DNA of 64,000 nt from Zancudomyces culisetae HAW-14-8 (GCA_052426225.1 JBNJNM010000011.1:1-64000); one strand, 5' to 3'; shown: positions 22,198 to 43,623, numbered from the stretch's first letter. Made by a program: numbers and translations. Notes: generated by a model from the sequence alone, not told the origin.

Positions 22198-22605
22198 ATG
22201 AAGACCATTATAATCGGAACAGCAGCTTTGGGACTAACCTTTGCAAACAGCATGGGTGACTTGTCTTTACGCCAACACAATAGATACCCAATTGGACCAA
22301 ACAGACTTTGTTCTTGTCGAAATCGCAGCGCTAGAATGAAGGTCGAAGTGTTCAAAGAGAAAAATCTCCAAAGTCCAGGTGAAACCCTAAATATAAGACC
22401 AAACAGATGTGTTTCATTACCAAGTGCCCTATCACTTCGATTTGACGATGGACAACCAGGGCGCGGATGGGCTGCACTATGCCACAGTAATGACTGTAGT
22501 GGAAAGTGTACAACTATAAGTAGAAAAGCCTGGCTTTACCCATATGATGTGGAAGCTGACAATGTTGGAGGACCTGCAAACTCTATGATTTGGTTCCTAG
22601 CATAG
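22198..22605 (+). CDS. Small secreted Cys-rich protein, beta/gamma-crystallin-like family member 1
   Basis: Signal peptide; TATATAAA 22107-22114; motif C..S..G..CxxxDCxGxC..SxxW shared with three paralogues. Confidence 0.85.
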   Translation: MKTIIIGTAALGLTFANSMGDLSLRQHNRYPIGPNRLCSCRNRSARMKVEVFKEKNLQSPGETLNIRPNRCVSLPSALSLRFDDGQPGRGWAALCHSNDCSGKCTTISRKAWLYPYDVEADNVGGPANSMIWFLA

Positions 22606-26687: not shown

Positions 26688-27098
26688 CTAGAGAGTCCAT
26701 CCTACTGATTTTGCATAAGCACCAAGATCAATTCCTGGGATATTATCTGGATAAAGTAGAATGCTTCTAGATGCGGTAAAGCAGTGCCCTTGACAGTCTG
26801 CCTCTACACAAAACGTAATATCTCCACTTCCTGGTTTACCATCGTCCATTTTTGCACTTCCGGTACTTGGAATGTTATAGCAGCGACCTGGTTTCAAATG
26901 TTTGATTTGACTTTTCCCTTGATAATGGGTTTTACTGAAAATCTCAAGCTTCATTTTTTTTTGATGATGACAACCGCAAAGGCGGTTGGGACTGTTGTCT
27001 GCTTGTTTGTTTTTGGCAGCTTGATTTGAATCTGCGATGCTGTATGCACTGGTCATACCCAGGCTCAAGCACATCATGCTGAATACGGAGAACTTCAT
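26688..27098 (-). CDS. Small secreted Cys-rich protein, beta/gamma-crystallin-like family member 2
   Basis: Signal peptide; PNRLCGC shared with member 1; FSKTHYQG..CYN..S..CVEADCQGHC..SVGW. Confidence 0.88.
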   Translation of the reverse strand: MKFSVFSMMCLSLGMTSAYSIADSNQAAKNKQADNSPNRLCGCHHQKKMKLEIFSKTHYQGKSQIKHLKPGRCYNIPSTGSAKMDDGKPGSGDITFCVEADCQGHCFTASRSILLYPDNIPGIDLGAYAKSVGWTL

Positions 27099-30030: not shown

Positions 30031-31273
30031 AAAACGTGCTGTAGCTATGTTTTATTTTTCTTTATCTTGATAAATATACTAAATTCTTTTTATCTATTGC
30101 TGTCTTTTTGGTTCGATTTTTTAATCAAGATGGTTGGAAACATGTGATGTTAATCAGACTCTATTTTCCAACTAAGCTAAACTACCTAACAATAAAACTA
30201 TACACAAACTTGGATACATTATATTTAGCTGTATAATAATGTTTATTTGTGCCATTAGTATATACCAAGACTCACTAGTGCAATCTAAAAAAGTAAATAT
30301 GCTTACCTAGTATGATAAAATTTGAAACGCTGCTTCATTCTCACTATTTTACTTATTTTAGACAATTTGTAATCATTGGGAAGAGGTGATCTTATGGTCA
30401 TTTACATTAGGTTAATAATAGTATTTTTATTATTTTCCGTCTACAACAATTATTTCTCACTATAAAAATGAAGAGTGAAAGTAAAGAATATTAAGTTCAT
30501 TAATTTAATAGGATCGGGTCTACTCTATTTGGTTTAGATAATTTTAAACAATTTCTAAGAATAGATTGACTTTAAATACTATTTTTAGTTCAATTTATTT
30601 TGTTCACTAAATCACCGTTAAATCGATATGTTATTTGCTCTGGATAAATTTCATTAGGATGAATTAGATTACCAATAACCCATAAATGGTTAGTACACGG
30701 GTATAATTATACTTTGGTATTTGTGAGTCAAAATTAAATATCAATTAAAAATAGATTTTGTTTATTGTTGTGTAAGAATTACAAAAATATTTTTAGTATT
30801 ATACTAAGCTCGCACTATACTTTACCATAAATCAAGTAAACACAATTATCGAACACAAATTAATATTGTTTGCTCTTTGTGCTCTAACACTTACTACAAA
30901 ATAACATTTTTTAAAAATATTAGAGTTAAGGTTAAGATATATTACAAAACCTGATTCTCTAAAATTACACATGCTTTCTAAATTTAGCCCTATATTCATT
31001 ACCAATACTCTTTACGGTTCTAAAATTAGGATTATTACTGGCACTTTAAAATTGATATAGGATACCCGTGAATTGTGTTTAAAGATTAAATTAAATTAAA
31101 AATATGAAAAAGAAAAAGTATAAAATGAGTCAAGATATCACTGTCAAAAAAAAAATATCAACAGTTGAAGATTCTTCAAGTGACAATTTAAAGCATAATC
31201 ATAATCATTTGTATTAAAATATTGCATTAGCAATCAGCTACATACAACGCTCATTTTAAACTAGATATCAAAA

Positions 31274-31678
31274 ATGGTAAAATCAACACTCGCACTCTTC
31301 ACTGCCGCAGTTGCCACAGTATCAGTAAATGCTGCTGTCACCCCAAGACCAAGAGCAAATGTCGGACCTATGCAACCACCTATGGAACAGGTCCAGGACT
31401 TTGGAAGATATGCTCCACCATCTCGCCCTGCCTTTAATAAACGCTTCGCTGCACCAGCCTATCGCAAGCGTGCTGACGAGGAGGAGGAAGTTGCACCAGC
31501 TGATGATGATTCTGCTCAAACTGTTGATCCTTCAGCAGAAGGTGGTGATGCAGGAAATGGAACCGATGATCGTTGGTGGTACGGATACTACGGCTACCCA
31601 TACTATGGCGGATACTACGGATATCCATCGTATGGTTACGGTTACAGATACCCATACTATGGTGGATACTACTACTAA
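31274..31678 (+). CDS. Secreted precursor with two KR sites, an acidic spacer and a Tyr/Gly-rich C-terminal peptide
   Basis: Signal peptide, NKR and RKR sites, tail WWYGYYGYPYYGGYYGYPSYGYGYRYPYYGGYYY; TATAAAA 31119-31125; GC-rich relative to flanks. Confidence 0.88.
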   Translation: MVKSTLALFTAAVATVSVNAAVTPRPRANVGPMQPPMEQVQDFGRYAPPSRPAFNKRFAAPAYRKRADEEEEVAPADDDSAQTVDPSAEGGDAGNGTDDRWWYGYYGYPYYGGYYGYPSYGYGYRYPYYGGYYY

Positions 31679-32284: not shown

Positions 32285-32680
32285 TTATTCGTTGGGGGCA
32301 GTACCCATTGACACCCATTTAATTGAAAGTGGACCAGATTTGAGATCTTCAGGGAAATTCCACATACCAGTTTGTAAAAACCTGGTATTTACTGTACACA
32401 CACCTCTACAGTCGTTTTCTCTGCATAGCAGCATTCCTCCTGATCTATTCGTGGGATTAAGAAATTGCGCTGAGGTGCCCTGCTCAATGTTATAACACTT
32501 GTGTTTTCTCATTTGGAAGTCGTTTATTACATCTCCTGAAAAGCGGTAGCCTGAGAATACTTTAACGTGTAAGGTTGGTCGAGAGGACCCATGGTGGTGA
32601 TGATGGCAATGGCCTGATACTAGCAGGGTTTGAGTAGCTGACAGAAGCTGGATAGCCAATGTATAACTTGAAACGCGCAT
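32285..32680 (-). CDS. Small secreted Cys-rich protein, beta/gamma-crystallin-like family member 3 (poly-His N-terminus)
   Basis: Signal peptide, HCHHHHH, VFSGYRFSG..CYN..S..CRENDCRGVC..SIKW. Confidence 0.87.
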   Translation of the reverse strand: MRVSSYTLAIQLLSATQTLLVSGHCHHHHHGSSRPTLHVKVFSGYRFSGDVINDFQMRKHKCYNIEQGTSAQFLNPTNRSGGMLLCRENDCRGVCTVNTRFLQTGMWNFPEDLKSGPLSIKWVSMGTAPNE

Positions 32681-35008: not shown

Positions 35009-36688
35009 TTATCGAATCTTAAAGTACAACCCCTTGTTTATGCAAAAATCGCTAAGGGATGTATAGTGAGAGAATGCGGGTTGTCCGTGTTCATTTCTTT
35101 TAATAGAGTAATTGGCATGCACCTCGTATTTTCTAATTATCATCGCCAACATCAGCTTCATAAGCGCAGCTGCATATATTCTTGCTAGACAGACCCGATT
35201 TCCAGCACCCCACATTAAATTAGCCAACGAAGCATCTGTTAGTTTCAGCCCAAGACGAATGTGTCGCTTGTAGTCGAATTCATTCGCATTTGGTCCAAAT
35301 ATTTCGGGATCCCTATTATGTCCCTGAATGTTAAAACTCACATATTGATGTTTAGAAATACTCACGCCATTAGACATCACTACTTCCTGAGTCGTACAAC
35401 GGGGCATGAATGGATCCGATCCCGAAAGCCTGATCGTTTCTTTAATGAACGCATCCAAGTACACCATTTCGTCCAACATTTCAAATGGAATATGGTTTTT
35501 ATCACCATTCTTTTCAATAAGCTCATTTTGTTCCTGCAGCAACTCTTTGTAGACGTCAGGCCTTAAACTAAGTTCTACTAATAGGTTGAATATCCGCCTT
35601 GATGCCACCTCCACACCAACCGCTACAATTGTCTGTATACAATACGCTACACTCGTTAGCTCCGCTTGGAAAATGCTAAAATTGTCTGTAAAAAATTGTA
35701 TTATGTCCTTTGGTTTACTATACTCGGGAAGATATTTTCTGCGACTCGACTCAAGTTCAAAATACTCATAAAAGTAGTTATTGCCCAAATACCCCGCAGT
35801 AAATAGTGTTGAAAAAAACTCTTGATTATTTACGTTTCCAAGCCTGGTCGGCTTCGTCACTTTTTTCAAGCTTTCAATCAAATTTCTGTCTCTTATTGCA
35901 TATGGGCCTAAAAATCTAAATATTATAGCAAATCTAACCATACTTTTTACTGTCTCATACAAGTTGTTAACCACTACCTCATTTCCATTATACATGCTTC
36001 CAGAGGATATAATCTCTCTCCTGATTACTTGTTCCAGGATCGGTTGGATTGCTTCCATCGATTCCTTCAAATCAACATATGACAGAAAATGTAACAAGTA
36101 TCTGCTGTATAGAATGTCATTAACGTGCATTCCTCTGGCTAATATTGTGTATTTGTGGTGATTTTTTAGGAAAGCCCGATTTTTATTGAATATCGTCTCT
36201 GGATGCTTTACATATTCTGACGAAAACCTTCCACCAATCAAAATACTTCTTCCTTGCTCCGAATTAACTATACACAGACTTTGGTTCATGTGCTTCCCAT
36301 AAACCTTACGTTCGCCATTGTATTCCTTCGAAGAGTTACTGCTAATACCAGCCTCCATGCATTTTACCTTTTTTAAACCATAGGGCACGGCTAGTTCCTT
36401 TAGTGTTTTTCTGATTGTTGCTGATAATTGGTAGCAAAAAAGGCAAAGTAAAACCACGTTCTTAATAAAAATCAGTATTTCTTGTAGCCATTGATCCGAG
36501 ACGATGTATTTTAATAGCCATTTTATATTGGATGCCAATAATGGTATGTAAATAAGATTTGCGAGTATGTGTCTGTATTCGCTCTCAGTTACAAACAACA
36601 CAAGGTCGTCAACAAACTGTATTGAAAATAATACACTCAGAATATAGTCGTGTACGTAGAAACTCAACCCCAGAACTGATATTTCCAT
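35009..36688 (-). CDS. Divergent cytochrome P450 (single ORF, no intron needed)
   Basis: ExxR (KETIR), HNRDPEIFG..EFDYKR meander, heme motif WGAGNRVCLA, hydrophobic N-terminus. Confidence 0.92.
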   Translation of the reverse strand: MEISVLGLSFYVHDYILSVLFSIQFVDDLVLFVTESEYRHILANLIYIPLLASNIKWLLKYIVSDQWLQEILIFIKNVVLLCLFCYQLSATIRKTLKELAVPYGLKKVKCMEAGISSNSSKEYNGERKVYGKHMNQSLCIVNSEQGRSILIGGRFSSEYVKHPETIFNKNRAFLKNHHKYTILARGMHVNDILYSRYLLHFLSYVDLKESMEAIQPILEQVIRREIISSGSMYNGNEVVVNNLYETVKSMVRFAIIFRFLGPYAIRDRNLIESLKKVTKPTRLGNVNNQEFFSTLFTAGYLGNNYFYEYFELESSRRKYLPEYSKPKDIIQFFTDNFSIFQAELTSVAYCIQTIVAVGVEVASRRIFNLLVELSLRPDVYKELLQEQNELIEKNGDKNHIPFEMLDEMVYLDAFIKETIRLSGSDPFMPRCTTQEVVMSNGVSISKHQYVSFNIQGHNRDPEIFGPNANEFDYKRHIRLGLKLTDASLANLMWGAGNRVCLARIYAAALMKLMLAMIIRKYEVHANYSIKRNEHGQPAFSHYTSLSDFCINKGLYFKIR

Positions 36689-38964: not shown

Positions 38965-40060
38965 ATGTCGTTCACGATTCTAAACAATAGTCCGGAATTC
39001 ATAGCAGGTAGCCTAAGTAATGAAAGCGACATGCCCAGGCATTCATTAAGTGATGTACGAATAAGACCAGCGTTTACAATTGCCAAGGAACCGCTGTCTG
39101 TATATATAACAGCAACACACCTAGTTGTTTTTTCAACTGCTCAAAACTCTGGATTTAGCATTGCCTACGACTCTATTGCTTTGTACGCAAGATCATCAAA
39201 ACAGGATAAAGTAGATTCCGAGAACGAAAATAATCTGGGAGATTGCATCTATTTACAACTAGAGCTCTCATTCTCATTCTCATCCTCTGTTCTTAACAAT
39301 GCTTCTCAAGAGGATTCCCACCTTGCAGGCAGCAGATAAAACATAAATGTCGAAAGTCTAAATGGCTCATACAATGAGGACGAGAGTGCGGATAATTCCT
39401 GGGATGAAAATCTCGAGGAGGAAATTTAATTTTCTGAATTGTTTATTTTTCACCAGGATTTGAACAAGCGTGAGTCCACTTTTTATGTCAGTCGATTTTA
39501 ACTTTTTTTACAGAGTAGCAGAAAAATACAGTTTGAGCTTTCAATTGCTAAAAATGGAATACCGATAATAGTTGATGAGCTCTACACTGCTTTATGCAAA
39601 GCAATACCCCTTCTTCCACCATCTTTTTCCGATCCCCAAGACCTTTTGGATTACCAGAATAACCAAGCATTTTCAGATACTTGTGCTCCAAATAATGAGT
39701 TTTGTCAAGTCCAAAAAGATTCAGGTATTGAGTATGATTATAAGTATGGGATGGAATCCTTAGTTCATAAGACAAACAATTCTTCAATAGGAGAAGGCGA
39801 CTTGAACACAGATAGTGGTGATTCGTCTGTTTTAAAAATTTCACTTTTAGAAGTACTCAATGAAACTGAAGCCTCTTACTTTACCGATTCTTGTGATATC
39901 GATAAATTAACAGAGGCGGGGAGGTAAGCATATATACTTTGTTCTCCTCAATTCATTTCCTATAGTATCTTAAATAAATTTTTGGTGTGCACCGTTTATT
40001 GTGATACTTAGGCGACATTAGAACGGTTAAGTAACTTACTGGACAAAGATAGTTCGTGGT
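38965..40060 (+). pseudogene. pICln/Lot5-like (Voldacs) methylosome subunit, disrupted
   Basis: GFSIAYDSIALYA, CIYLQL, acidic loop, ELFIF, DELYTALC, LTEAGR/ATLERL; introns 39470-39571 and 39924-40011; in-frame TAA at 39337 and 39427; 1-nt frame mismatch at the last intron. Confidence 0.75.
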
Positions 40061-43161: not shown

Positions 43162-43623
43162 ATGTTCAAGTCAGTCTTAGTCAGTGCCTTACTTTTCGGT
43201 TCAACCTTAGCCAGTGCAGTAAACATGAGCGGTAACCAACAGAATCAAAATAATGATCTTGCTAATTCCGAACACAACAAAAATCTCTCTGGCTGTGAAT
43301 TCAACGATATGCATCGTCGCTGCAAGGCCAAGAGAACAACTGTTAGATTGTACAAGGCTGCCGGTTTTGTTAACAGATACGAAAAGCGCAGTATCAGACG
43401 TGGAAAGTGCTACAACACAAGAAAATTCGGATCAATCAAGGTCGGAAGAAAGAGTGGATTGGATAAACCAGGAAAGGGAGTAATCTTGGTTTGCGGGGAT
43501 AAGGATTGTACCGGTAAATGTCAGATAGTCCGTAGATCATCAGCCAAGACTATTTCCAATATATCCGAAGTTTTAGGAAGAAGAGCTATTTCATTCGCTT
43601 GGCTCAGGGTTAAGAGAACCTAA
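43162..43623 (+). CDS. Small secreted Cys-rich protein, beta/gamma-crystallin-like family member 4 (very basic)
   Basis: Signal peptide; LYKAAGF..CYN..S..KPGKG..CGDKDCTGKC..SFAW. Confidence 0.88.
   Translation: MFKSVLVSALLFGSTLASAVNMSGNQQNQNNDLANSEHNKNLSGCEFNDMHRRCKAKRTTVRLYKAAGFVNRYEKRSIRRGKCYNTRKFGSIKVGRKSGLDKPGKGVILVCGDKDCTGKCQIVRRSSAKTISNISEVLGRRAISFAWLRVKRT

Follow-up and report, generated by a model that had tools for sequence, protein, structure and literature searches.

The DNA analysed here (the window, 64,000 nt) is the first 64 kb of contig 11 of Zancudomyces culisetae, identified through protein matches as the source organism, a Harpellales fungus of mosquito-larva hindguts. The window starts within a telomere, with CCCTAA repeats from base 1 (1-360). 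Near its middle lies a small gene for a predicted secreted precursor with a tyrosine- and glycine-rich C-terminal tail, followed by two convergent genes, one for a small secreted protein and one for a cytochrome P450. The features discussed below are:

31113..31125, plus strand: A-run and GTATAAAA, forming a TATA-type core promoter some 150-160 nt 5' of the ATG
31274-31678, plus strand: complete, intronless coding sequence of the Tyr/Gly-tail precursor, 134 codons plus stop, ATG to TAA
31274..31333, plus strand: predicted signal peptide, codons 1-20, hydrophobic and near-invariant, the sole helix of the AlphaFold model
31334..31471, plus strand: basic Pro/Arg-rich pro-region, codons 21-66, charge +7 at pH 7
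31436-31444, plus strand: NKR, codons 55-57, within the pro-region, non-conserved
31463-31471, plus strand: RKR, codons 64-66, conserved, closing the pro-region
31472..31561, plus strand: acidic spacer, codons 67-96, 11 D+E in 30 residues
31562..31573, plus strand: TDDR junction, codons 97-100, candidate second processing site, invariant in 10/10 aligned family members
31574..31675, plus strand: Tyr/Gly tail, codons 101-134, 34 residues, the most constrained part
32285..32680, minus strand: predicted 131-aa secreted four-Cys protein with a beta/gamma-crystallin fold, tail-to-tail with the Tyr gene
35009..36688, minus strand: cytochrome P450 gene (PF00067, E 2.6e-29), 3.3 kb downstream and convergent

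The precursor ORF has a G+C content of 49%, compared with 33% for the window, and upstream of its ATG just three in-frame codons separate it from a stop. The original prediction had described a signal peptide, a Pro/Arg segment, NKR and RKR sites, an acidic spacer and DDR, followed by a 34-residue tail with 18 Tyr and 9 Gly in which YPYYGGYY occurs twice. Every part of that layout is present in the ORF, and codons 101-134 bear out the description of the tail, which is composed of 18 Y, 9 G, 3 P, 2 W, 1 S and 1 R (53% Tyr) and is encoded by 3.4 tandem copies of a degenerate 27-nt (9-codon) repeat. Six-frame translation of the 64-kb window yields just one further 34-residue stop-free stretch with at least 9 Tyr, a simple repeat next to the telomere with the reading YPYPYP. 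The Tyr-rich tail is not a chance occurrence, given its uniqueness in the window and the selected composition across paralogues described below. The YPYPYP repeat itself (1540-1680, about 1.5 kb into the contig) gives this reading in one frame and contains no gene.

The N-terminus of the precursor is hydrophobic (mean Kyte-Doolittle value of 1.77 for residues 4-18), is modelled by AlphaFold as a helix over residues 4-20, and has V-N-A preceding the likely cut. In the AlphaFold model, which was built with the family alignment, this signal helix is the only secondary structure (mean pLDDT 51, pTM 0.12), and the tail has a pLDDT below 50. At pH 7 the calculated charge comes to +7 in the pro-region, -12 in the spacer and about +1 in the tail, which is essentially uncharged. 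From these predictions, the precursor appears to be a secreted, intrinsically disordered prepropeptide.

Searching the 27.1-Mb assembly in six frames with the precursor returned 30 matches at E <=1e-20, of which 24 are full-length copies, all without an internal stop. The family is concentrated near chromosome termini as represented by contig ends: 25 of the 30 copies lie within 85 kb of a contig end and five are internal, and all 19 copies at >=92% identity lie 14-61 kb from a contig end. DNA context was read at 20 family loci, in stretches of up to 10 kb, with 11 copies known from search rows alone; the downstream side could be scored at 19 loci, with five plus-strand copies left out.

Outside Z. 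culisetae we identified no relatives. A Pfam scan of the precursor gave no match at E up to 10, and word-based searches of 5.8 billion proteins, with either the whole precursor or the tail alone, matched only paralogues from Z. culisetae, all of them annotated as hypothetical proteins. An exhaustive HMMER search of 1.84 billion representative proteins with a profile of the N-terminal 111 positions likewise found no relatives outside the species; its four matches are three family members and one frameshifted copy without a name. In the ESM Atlas the best scores, 0.83 for the whole precursor and 0.77 for residues 67-134, were to an oomycete 'glycine-rich protein' cluster and fall below the level at which they would be meaningful. 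The literature search did not find the family described, and the databases annotate its members as 'hypothetical protein'. With about 30 copies in the genome and none detected in other species, the family seems to be an orphan of the Z. culisetae lineage as far as present databases show.

Comparison of the copies with one another indicates that the gene is functional. Nei-Gojobori estimates for 13 copies gave whole-gene dN/dS values of 0.09-0.35. By region, the ratio was 0-0.8 for the signal peptide, which offers few sites, 0.09-0.42 for the pro-region, and 0.2-0.7 among diverged pairs for the acidic spacer, the least constrained part; for TDDR plus the tail it was 0.02-0.15 at dS of 0.27 to above 1. 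Alignment of a low-complexity tail favours matches, and a low tail ratio was also obtained from close copies that align without gaps. Of the 33 codons that vary among ten near-identical copies within the first 102, 22 differ in purely synonymous ways, and the flanking 1 kb declines to about 70-75% identity while the coding sequence keeps 94-98%. The precursor gene is real and under purifying selection, with the tail as its most strongly constrained part.

The promoter is also conserved. In 12 of the 13 copies compared, among them the diverged copies L027, L032 and L033, GTATAAAA with its A-run lies between -147 and -189, and the remaining copy reads N at that position. That the ORF is a non-functional frame carried passively in subtelomeric repeat DNA is hardly credible, although the site does lie in duplicated subtelomeric blocks and the family is restricted to one species. 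Synonymous changes are numerous and no region has a dN/dS close to 1, every full-length copy is open, the coding sequence is conserved where its flanks are not, the promoter element is conserved, and intact diverged copies occur in housekeeping neighbourhoods.

The family conserves some features by sequence and others by composition. Sequence is invariant or almost so in the signal peptide, in a PRPR motif, at K65-R66-A67 with the EEE behind it and at T97-D98-D99-R100-W, while the spacer varies from 30 to 48 residues through repeat indels. Across 15 copies, whose synonymous divergence reaches saturation, the tail measures 29-39 residues and contains 48-55% Tyr; with both length and tyrosine content held, selection maintains the composition of the tail. 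On this comparative evidence, the tail is the functional part of the protein and not a by-product of DNA slippage. The family represents an extreme case in which selection keeps amino-acid composition rather than sequence. Codon usage was considered as a proxy for expression and set aside: Tyr codons favour TAC (14:6) as they do in enolase (11:2), but Asp and Asn codons are not in step.

The arrangement of one variant is informative about the precursor's modular structure. In the two-unit copy P0004, the first tail runs directly into RKR, after which come another acidic spacer, TDDR and another aromatic tail. This indicates that the modular unit consists of spacer, TDDR and tail and is bounded by RKR. 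Of the two basic sites named in the original prediction, both of which are present in the window copy, RKR is conserved in the family and NKR is not: NKR is found in the window copy and one other, and elsewhere the position mostly reads NNR, or else NRR or NNH.

The genome encodes a kexin, recognized by a single PF01483 P-domain match (74 bits), which lies at C15:1061245 in an open frame of 854 aa. Following removal of the signal peptide, a kexin-type convertase would most likely cut at RKR↓A (the arrow marks the cut), which would yield a basic Pro/Arg-rich propeptide and a unit of acidic spacer plus the ~34-residue, half-tyrosine tail. Since only RKR↓A is conserved among the dibasic sites, kexin would release spacer and tail together, and freeing the tail would thus require a second, monobasic cut at TDDR↓W. 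The earlier notion of KR sites flanking the product is therefore only partly correct. TDDR↓W is probably the second maturation site, where a trypsin-like protease from the fungus or the host gut might cut to free the uncharged aromatic tail from the solubilising acidic spacer. TDDR is not a canonical kexin site, and its acidic P2 and P3 residues disfavour trypsin. We infer both cleavages, at RKR↓A and at TDDR↓W, from the conserved sites.

A trypsin-family (PF00089) gene was observed at L033:3366-4241(-) in the older assembly (LSSK01000025.1), 6 kb upstream of P0004. Its position there may be a coincidence, yet it represents the type of enzyme that cleavage at TDDR↓W would need.

Among described systems, the precursor is closest in kind to fungal Kex2-processed precursors, a set that includes KEPs, alpha-factor-type precursors and pro-domain effectors. 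It shares with them a signal peptide, a conserved dibasic site that precedes the product, an acidic spacer and the presence of a genomic kexin gene, and P0004 adds an RKR that separates two units. AlphaFold and hydropathy also predict an N-terminal hydrophobic segment and no other membrane segment, as in KEPs. KEPs have been defined by a signal peptide, cleavage at KR or RR into >=4 fragments, and a motif repeated >=3 times (PMC6339444). The window copy, in contrast, has one unit and two KR sites, of which one is conserved, and the richest variant, P0004, has two units; the product is also much longer and of low complexity, and bears no sequence relation to described KEPs. We therefore regard the family as a Kex2-processed secreted peptide precursor in kind, one with an exceptionally extreme tail, the composition of which selection maintains.

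This layout could also belong to a diffusible bioactive peptide, antimicrobial or signalling, in which the kexin-released tail, the Pro/Arg propeptide or both act on gut bacteria, competitors or the host. A signal peptide, dibasic site, acidic spacer and C-terminal peptide make up a classic peptide-hormone or antimicrobial peptide precursor, and Tyr-rich peptides released by Kex2 have been noted in Rhizophagus irregularis (PMC6339444). The pro-region, conserved at the dN/dS given above and with its charge of +7, recalls insect proline-rich antimicrobial peptides, and the genes are multicopy, subtelomeric and neighboured by others for small secreted proteins. The tail would in this case correspond to the YGGYG-type NLP/CNC peptides of nematodes. 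The nematode NLP-29/31 and caenacin precursors similarly have signal peptides and basic processing sites, give rise to YG-repeat peptides and form clustered multigene families; theirs, however, are Gly-dominated and cationic, whereas the Z. culisetae tail is Tyr-dominated (50% Tyr) and neutral, and no similarity between them was detected. The tail has at most two basic residues and is uncharged at pH 7, unlike cationic antimicrobial peptides, and Pfam, the protein databases and the ESM Atlas revealed no sequence relation to a known peptide family. On balance, we consider a bioactive peptide unlikely, although it is a serious competitor to the interpretation developed below.

The most constant neighbour of the Tyr gene across the genome is the 131-aa gene that faces it tail-to-tail, and not the P450. 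A homologue of this gene was found downstream, in the same tail-to-tail orientation, at 18 of 19 evaluable loci. The partner is kept even at loci where its identity falls to 50-68% and the DNA on either side is unrelated, which indicates that the pair is the unit of duplication. Ten of these 18 partner copies look intact, and six are frameshifted, truncated or interrupted by a stop while the adjacent Tyr genes are open. One locus (L032) has an intact, diverged Tyr copy without the partner.

The 131-aa protein has a signal-like N-terminus and no Pfam match. Its AlphaFold model has a mean pLDDT of 78, with a core of 88-96, and the top 50 Foldseek matches in the PDB are all beta/gamma-crystallin domains, the double Greek-key beta-sandwich type, with weak E values of 0.03-0.15 at probabilities of 0.87-1.0 and a TM-score, normalized by target, of about 0.6. 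A word search for homologues of the crystallin-like protein, intended to lead to diverged analogues in other species, returned Z. culisetae proteins only. An element similar to the Tyr-gene promoter is located at about -105 to -111 before crystallin-like genes.

These observations raise the possibility of a two-component secreted module, in which the crystallin-fold protein would act on the Tyr-tail peptide as carrier or solubiliser, or the two would form a co-assembling toxin/effector pair. The consistent pairing as a duplication unit, including at diverged loci, the similar TATA-type promoters and the crystallin fold supported by model and PDB matches are compatible with such a module. Against it, six of the 18 partner copies are broken beside intact Tyr genes, the intact L032 copy has no crystallin-like partner, duplicated copies of the pair are not independent evidence, and crystallin-like genes are abundant throughout Z. 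culisetae subtelomeres anyway. Judged from the sequences, we think it quite improbable.

The window contains four small ORFs of 131-153 aa predicted to be secreted, at 22198-22605(+), 26688-27098(-), 32285-32680(-) and 43162-43623(+). Four invariant Cys are common to all of them, as are a Gly, a Ser and a Trp, and the one that was modelled adopts the beta/gamma-crystallin fold. Further crystallin-like copies occur upstream of six family loci (L015, L016, L022, L025, L026 and L027). The 131-aa ORF also contains a His tract (32585-32620, codons 24-31), so that its predicted mature N-terminus reads HCHHHHH. The contig-7 copy has three additional His, and in diverged copies the tract is replaced by RHRHH or GCNSM. 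Its composition suggests that the tract may be a metal-binding or pH-sensing tag.

The second neighbour, the P450, invited a different explanation. The original prediction had raised the possibility of a new fungal RiPP precursor, and the P450 could in that case cross-link Tyr or Trp residues of the tail through biaryl or aryl-ether bonds before proteolysis releases a cyclised product. The gene is convergent at 3.3 kb, the protein has the heme Cys and ExxR motif and lacks the usual I-helix Thr, and the precursor has a leader conserved in the family. Bacterial P450s are known to cross-link YxY-type motifs in RiPPs (PMC12002111, PMC11659900). The precursor resembles P450-cross-linked RiPPs such as biarylitides, cittilins and aminopyruvatide in having an aromatic-rich core after a conserved leader and, for eight copies, a P450 close by; those systems, however, are bacterial and cytosolic with dedicated adjacent enzymes, whereas here the linkage comes from one duplicated block and most copies have no P450.

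The distribution of the P450 bears directly on this. The P450 subfamily comprises 16 copies that are 82-100% identical and occupy both subtelomeric and internal sites. Of these, eight are located within 3.3-6.8 kb of a family member and the other eight have no family member nearby; conversely, about 22 of the roughly 30 family members have no P450 nearby. On contigs 7, 14 and 21 (on the P450 side) and at the start of contig 13 (on the upstream side), 10-kb stretches align collinearly with the window, across intergenic DNA as well, at 92-96% identity, and two further readable P450-linked loci have the same block with an insertion. Because all eight linkages fall in one collinear subtelomeric block, at least 10 kb long where it was read from end to end, they represent approximately one event and not eight independent ones. 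The internal, diverged and intact copies adjoin enolase/PFK or RasGEF/BAH genes and have no P450, and at the contig-21-end locus the P450 has an in-frame stop while the Tyr gene is intact.

Other properties of the P450 and the precursor also speak against a RiPP. Among solved structures, those nearest to the P450 belong to ordinary eukaryotic and BM3-type enzymes. The catalytic domain of a microsomal P450 normally lies on the cytosolic side, whereas precursors with a signal peptide enter the ER lumen. The tail is a single stretch of 34 residues with no KR inside it, and not a series of many KR-flanked core repeats. Fungal dikaritins (ustiloxin, phomopsin and asperipin) are alike in having a signal peptide and KR sites, but their UstYa hallmark was not found: a search of the whole genome for UstYa/DUF3328 (PF11807) gave no match, with control genomes that were prokaryotic and so provided no eukaryotic positive control. 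The block-duplicated P450, the P450-free internal copies and the UstYa result weaken the proposal of a new fungal RiPP precursor, and we now rate it as very unlikely. The window P450 is probably linked to the Tyr gene by block duplication and not part of the system. For genome mining, the locus is a caution, as a Tyr-rich precursor next to a P450 is explained here by duplication of a subtelomeric block. The N-terminal ~310 residues of the window P450 lie outside the Pfam match and form a long, multiply hydrophobic region.

The composition of the tail suggests a third kind of function. We propose, tentatively, that the precursor is secreted and disordered and that its tail forms a self-associating, possibly cross-linkable material, either a holdfast adhesive or a component of the spore or hyphal wall. 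The tail, as the selected and active part, would operate outside the cell. Being uncharged and extremely aromatic, it should self-associate and bind aromatic or chitinous surfaces, and it would lend itself readily to phenol oxidation. Until its removal, the acidic spacer would keep the tail in solution. A glue or wall-hardening peptide had been put forward in the original prediction; it is compatible with everything seen and is, in our assessment, the likeliest class of function. We infer any modification of Tyr, as well as the material or adhesive role, from composition and the biology of the fungus.

That biology provides a plausible setting. Sporangiospores of Z. culisetae release a holdfast substance and are attached to the hindgut lining within ~90 s of extrusion, which potassium together with a pH shift can bring about in vitro; the molecular nature of this substance is unknown (PMC13062954, PMC5954228). 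The sole published molecular holdfast candidate is a fasciclin-domain protein that emerged from comparative genomics (PMC5954228). The genome contains at least seven tyrosinase-domain genes, the closest about 23 kb from a family member. Two of these, at C10:39092-39607(-) and C23:79292-79819(-), are subtelomeric and lie 23 kb and 43 kb from family members at the same contig ends.

The tail can be compared with known Tyr/DOPA adhesives and related materials, namely mussel foot proteins 3 and 5, sandcastle-worm cement and resilin- or extensin-type dityrosine materials. Shared properties are a short, secreted, disordered Tyr/Gly-rich sequence, tyrosinase genes in the genome and an organism that secretes an uncharacterised glue, and the acidic partner segment of the precursor recalls the charge-controlled solubility of cement proteins. 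In contrast to the mussel proteins, Tyr accounts for ~50% of the tail, roughly twice their content, and Lys is almost absent. There is also no homology to these adhesives, and the tail has only ~34 residues.

Several observations count against a glue. The tail does not have the Lys partners of known DOPA adhesives, and no oxidase is tightly linked to the family genes. Word-based and profile searches of protein databases found no relatives in other holdfast-forming Harpellales, so that a glue conserved across the order could be equated with this family only if its analogues had diverged too far to be recognized. In addition, ~30 subtelomeric copies under turnover resemble an effector or antimicrobial arsenal as much as a structural gene.

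A more specific version of the material hypothesis takes account of the gut environment. Larval anterior midgut pH is ~10-11 (PMC12616018), and the midgut-to-hindgut pH shift together with potassium triggers spore extrusion and holdfast secretion (PMC5954228, PMC13062954, PMC12616018). The calculated charge of the tail changes from about -13 at pH 10.5, owing to its 18 phenols, to about +1 at pH 7, in parallel with the passage from alkaline midgut to near-neutral hindgut. The family could accordingly encode a pre-stored holdfast glue of Zancudomyces, a lysine-free, half-tyrosine bioadhesive that is kept soluble in the secretory pathway by the acidic spacer covalently joined to it and set by the cut at TDDR↓W, a fall in pH, or both; in this particular form we hold the idea to be distinctly unlikely. 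In its general form, the material hypothesis offers a concrete, testable candidate for Harpellales holdfast material, or for a wall or antimicrobial component, in the one culturable model species, where spore extrusion can be provoked in culture.

Elsewhere in the window, a small ORF at 38965-39339(+) encodes a Voldacs (pICln-type) domain (E 1.7e-9), and represents an ordinary housekeeping-type gene within a duplicated subtelomeric block.
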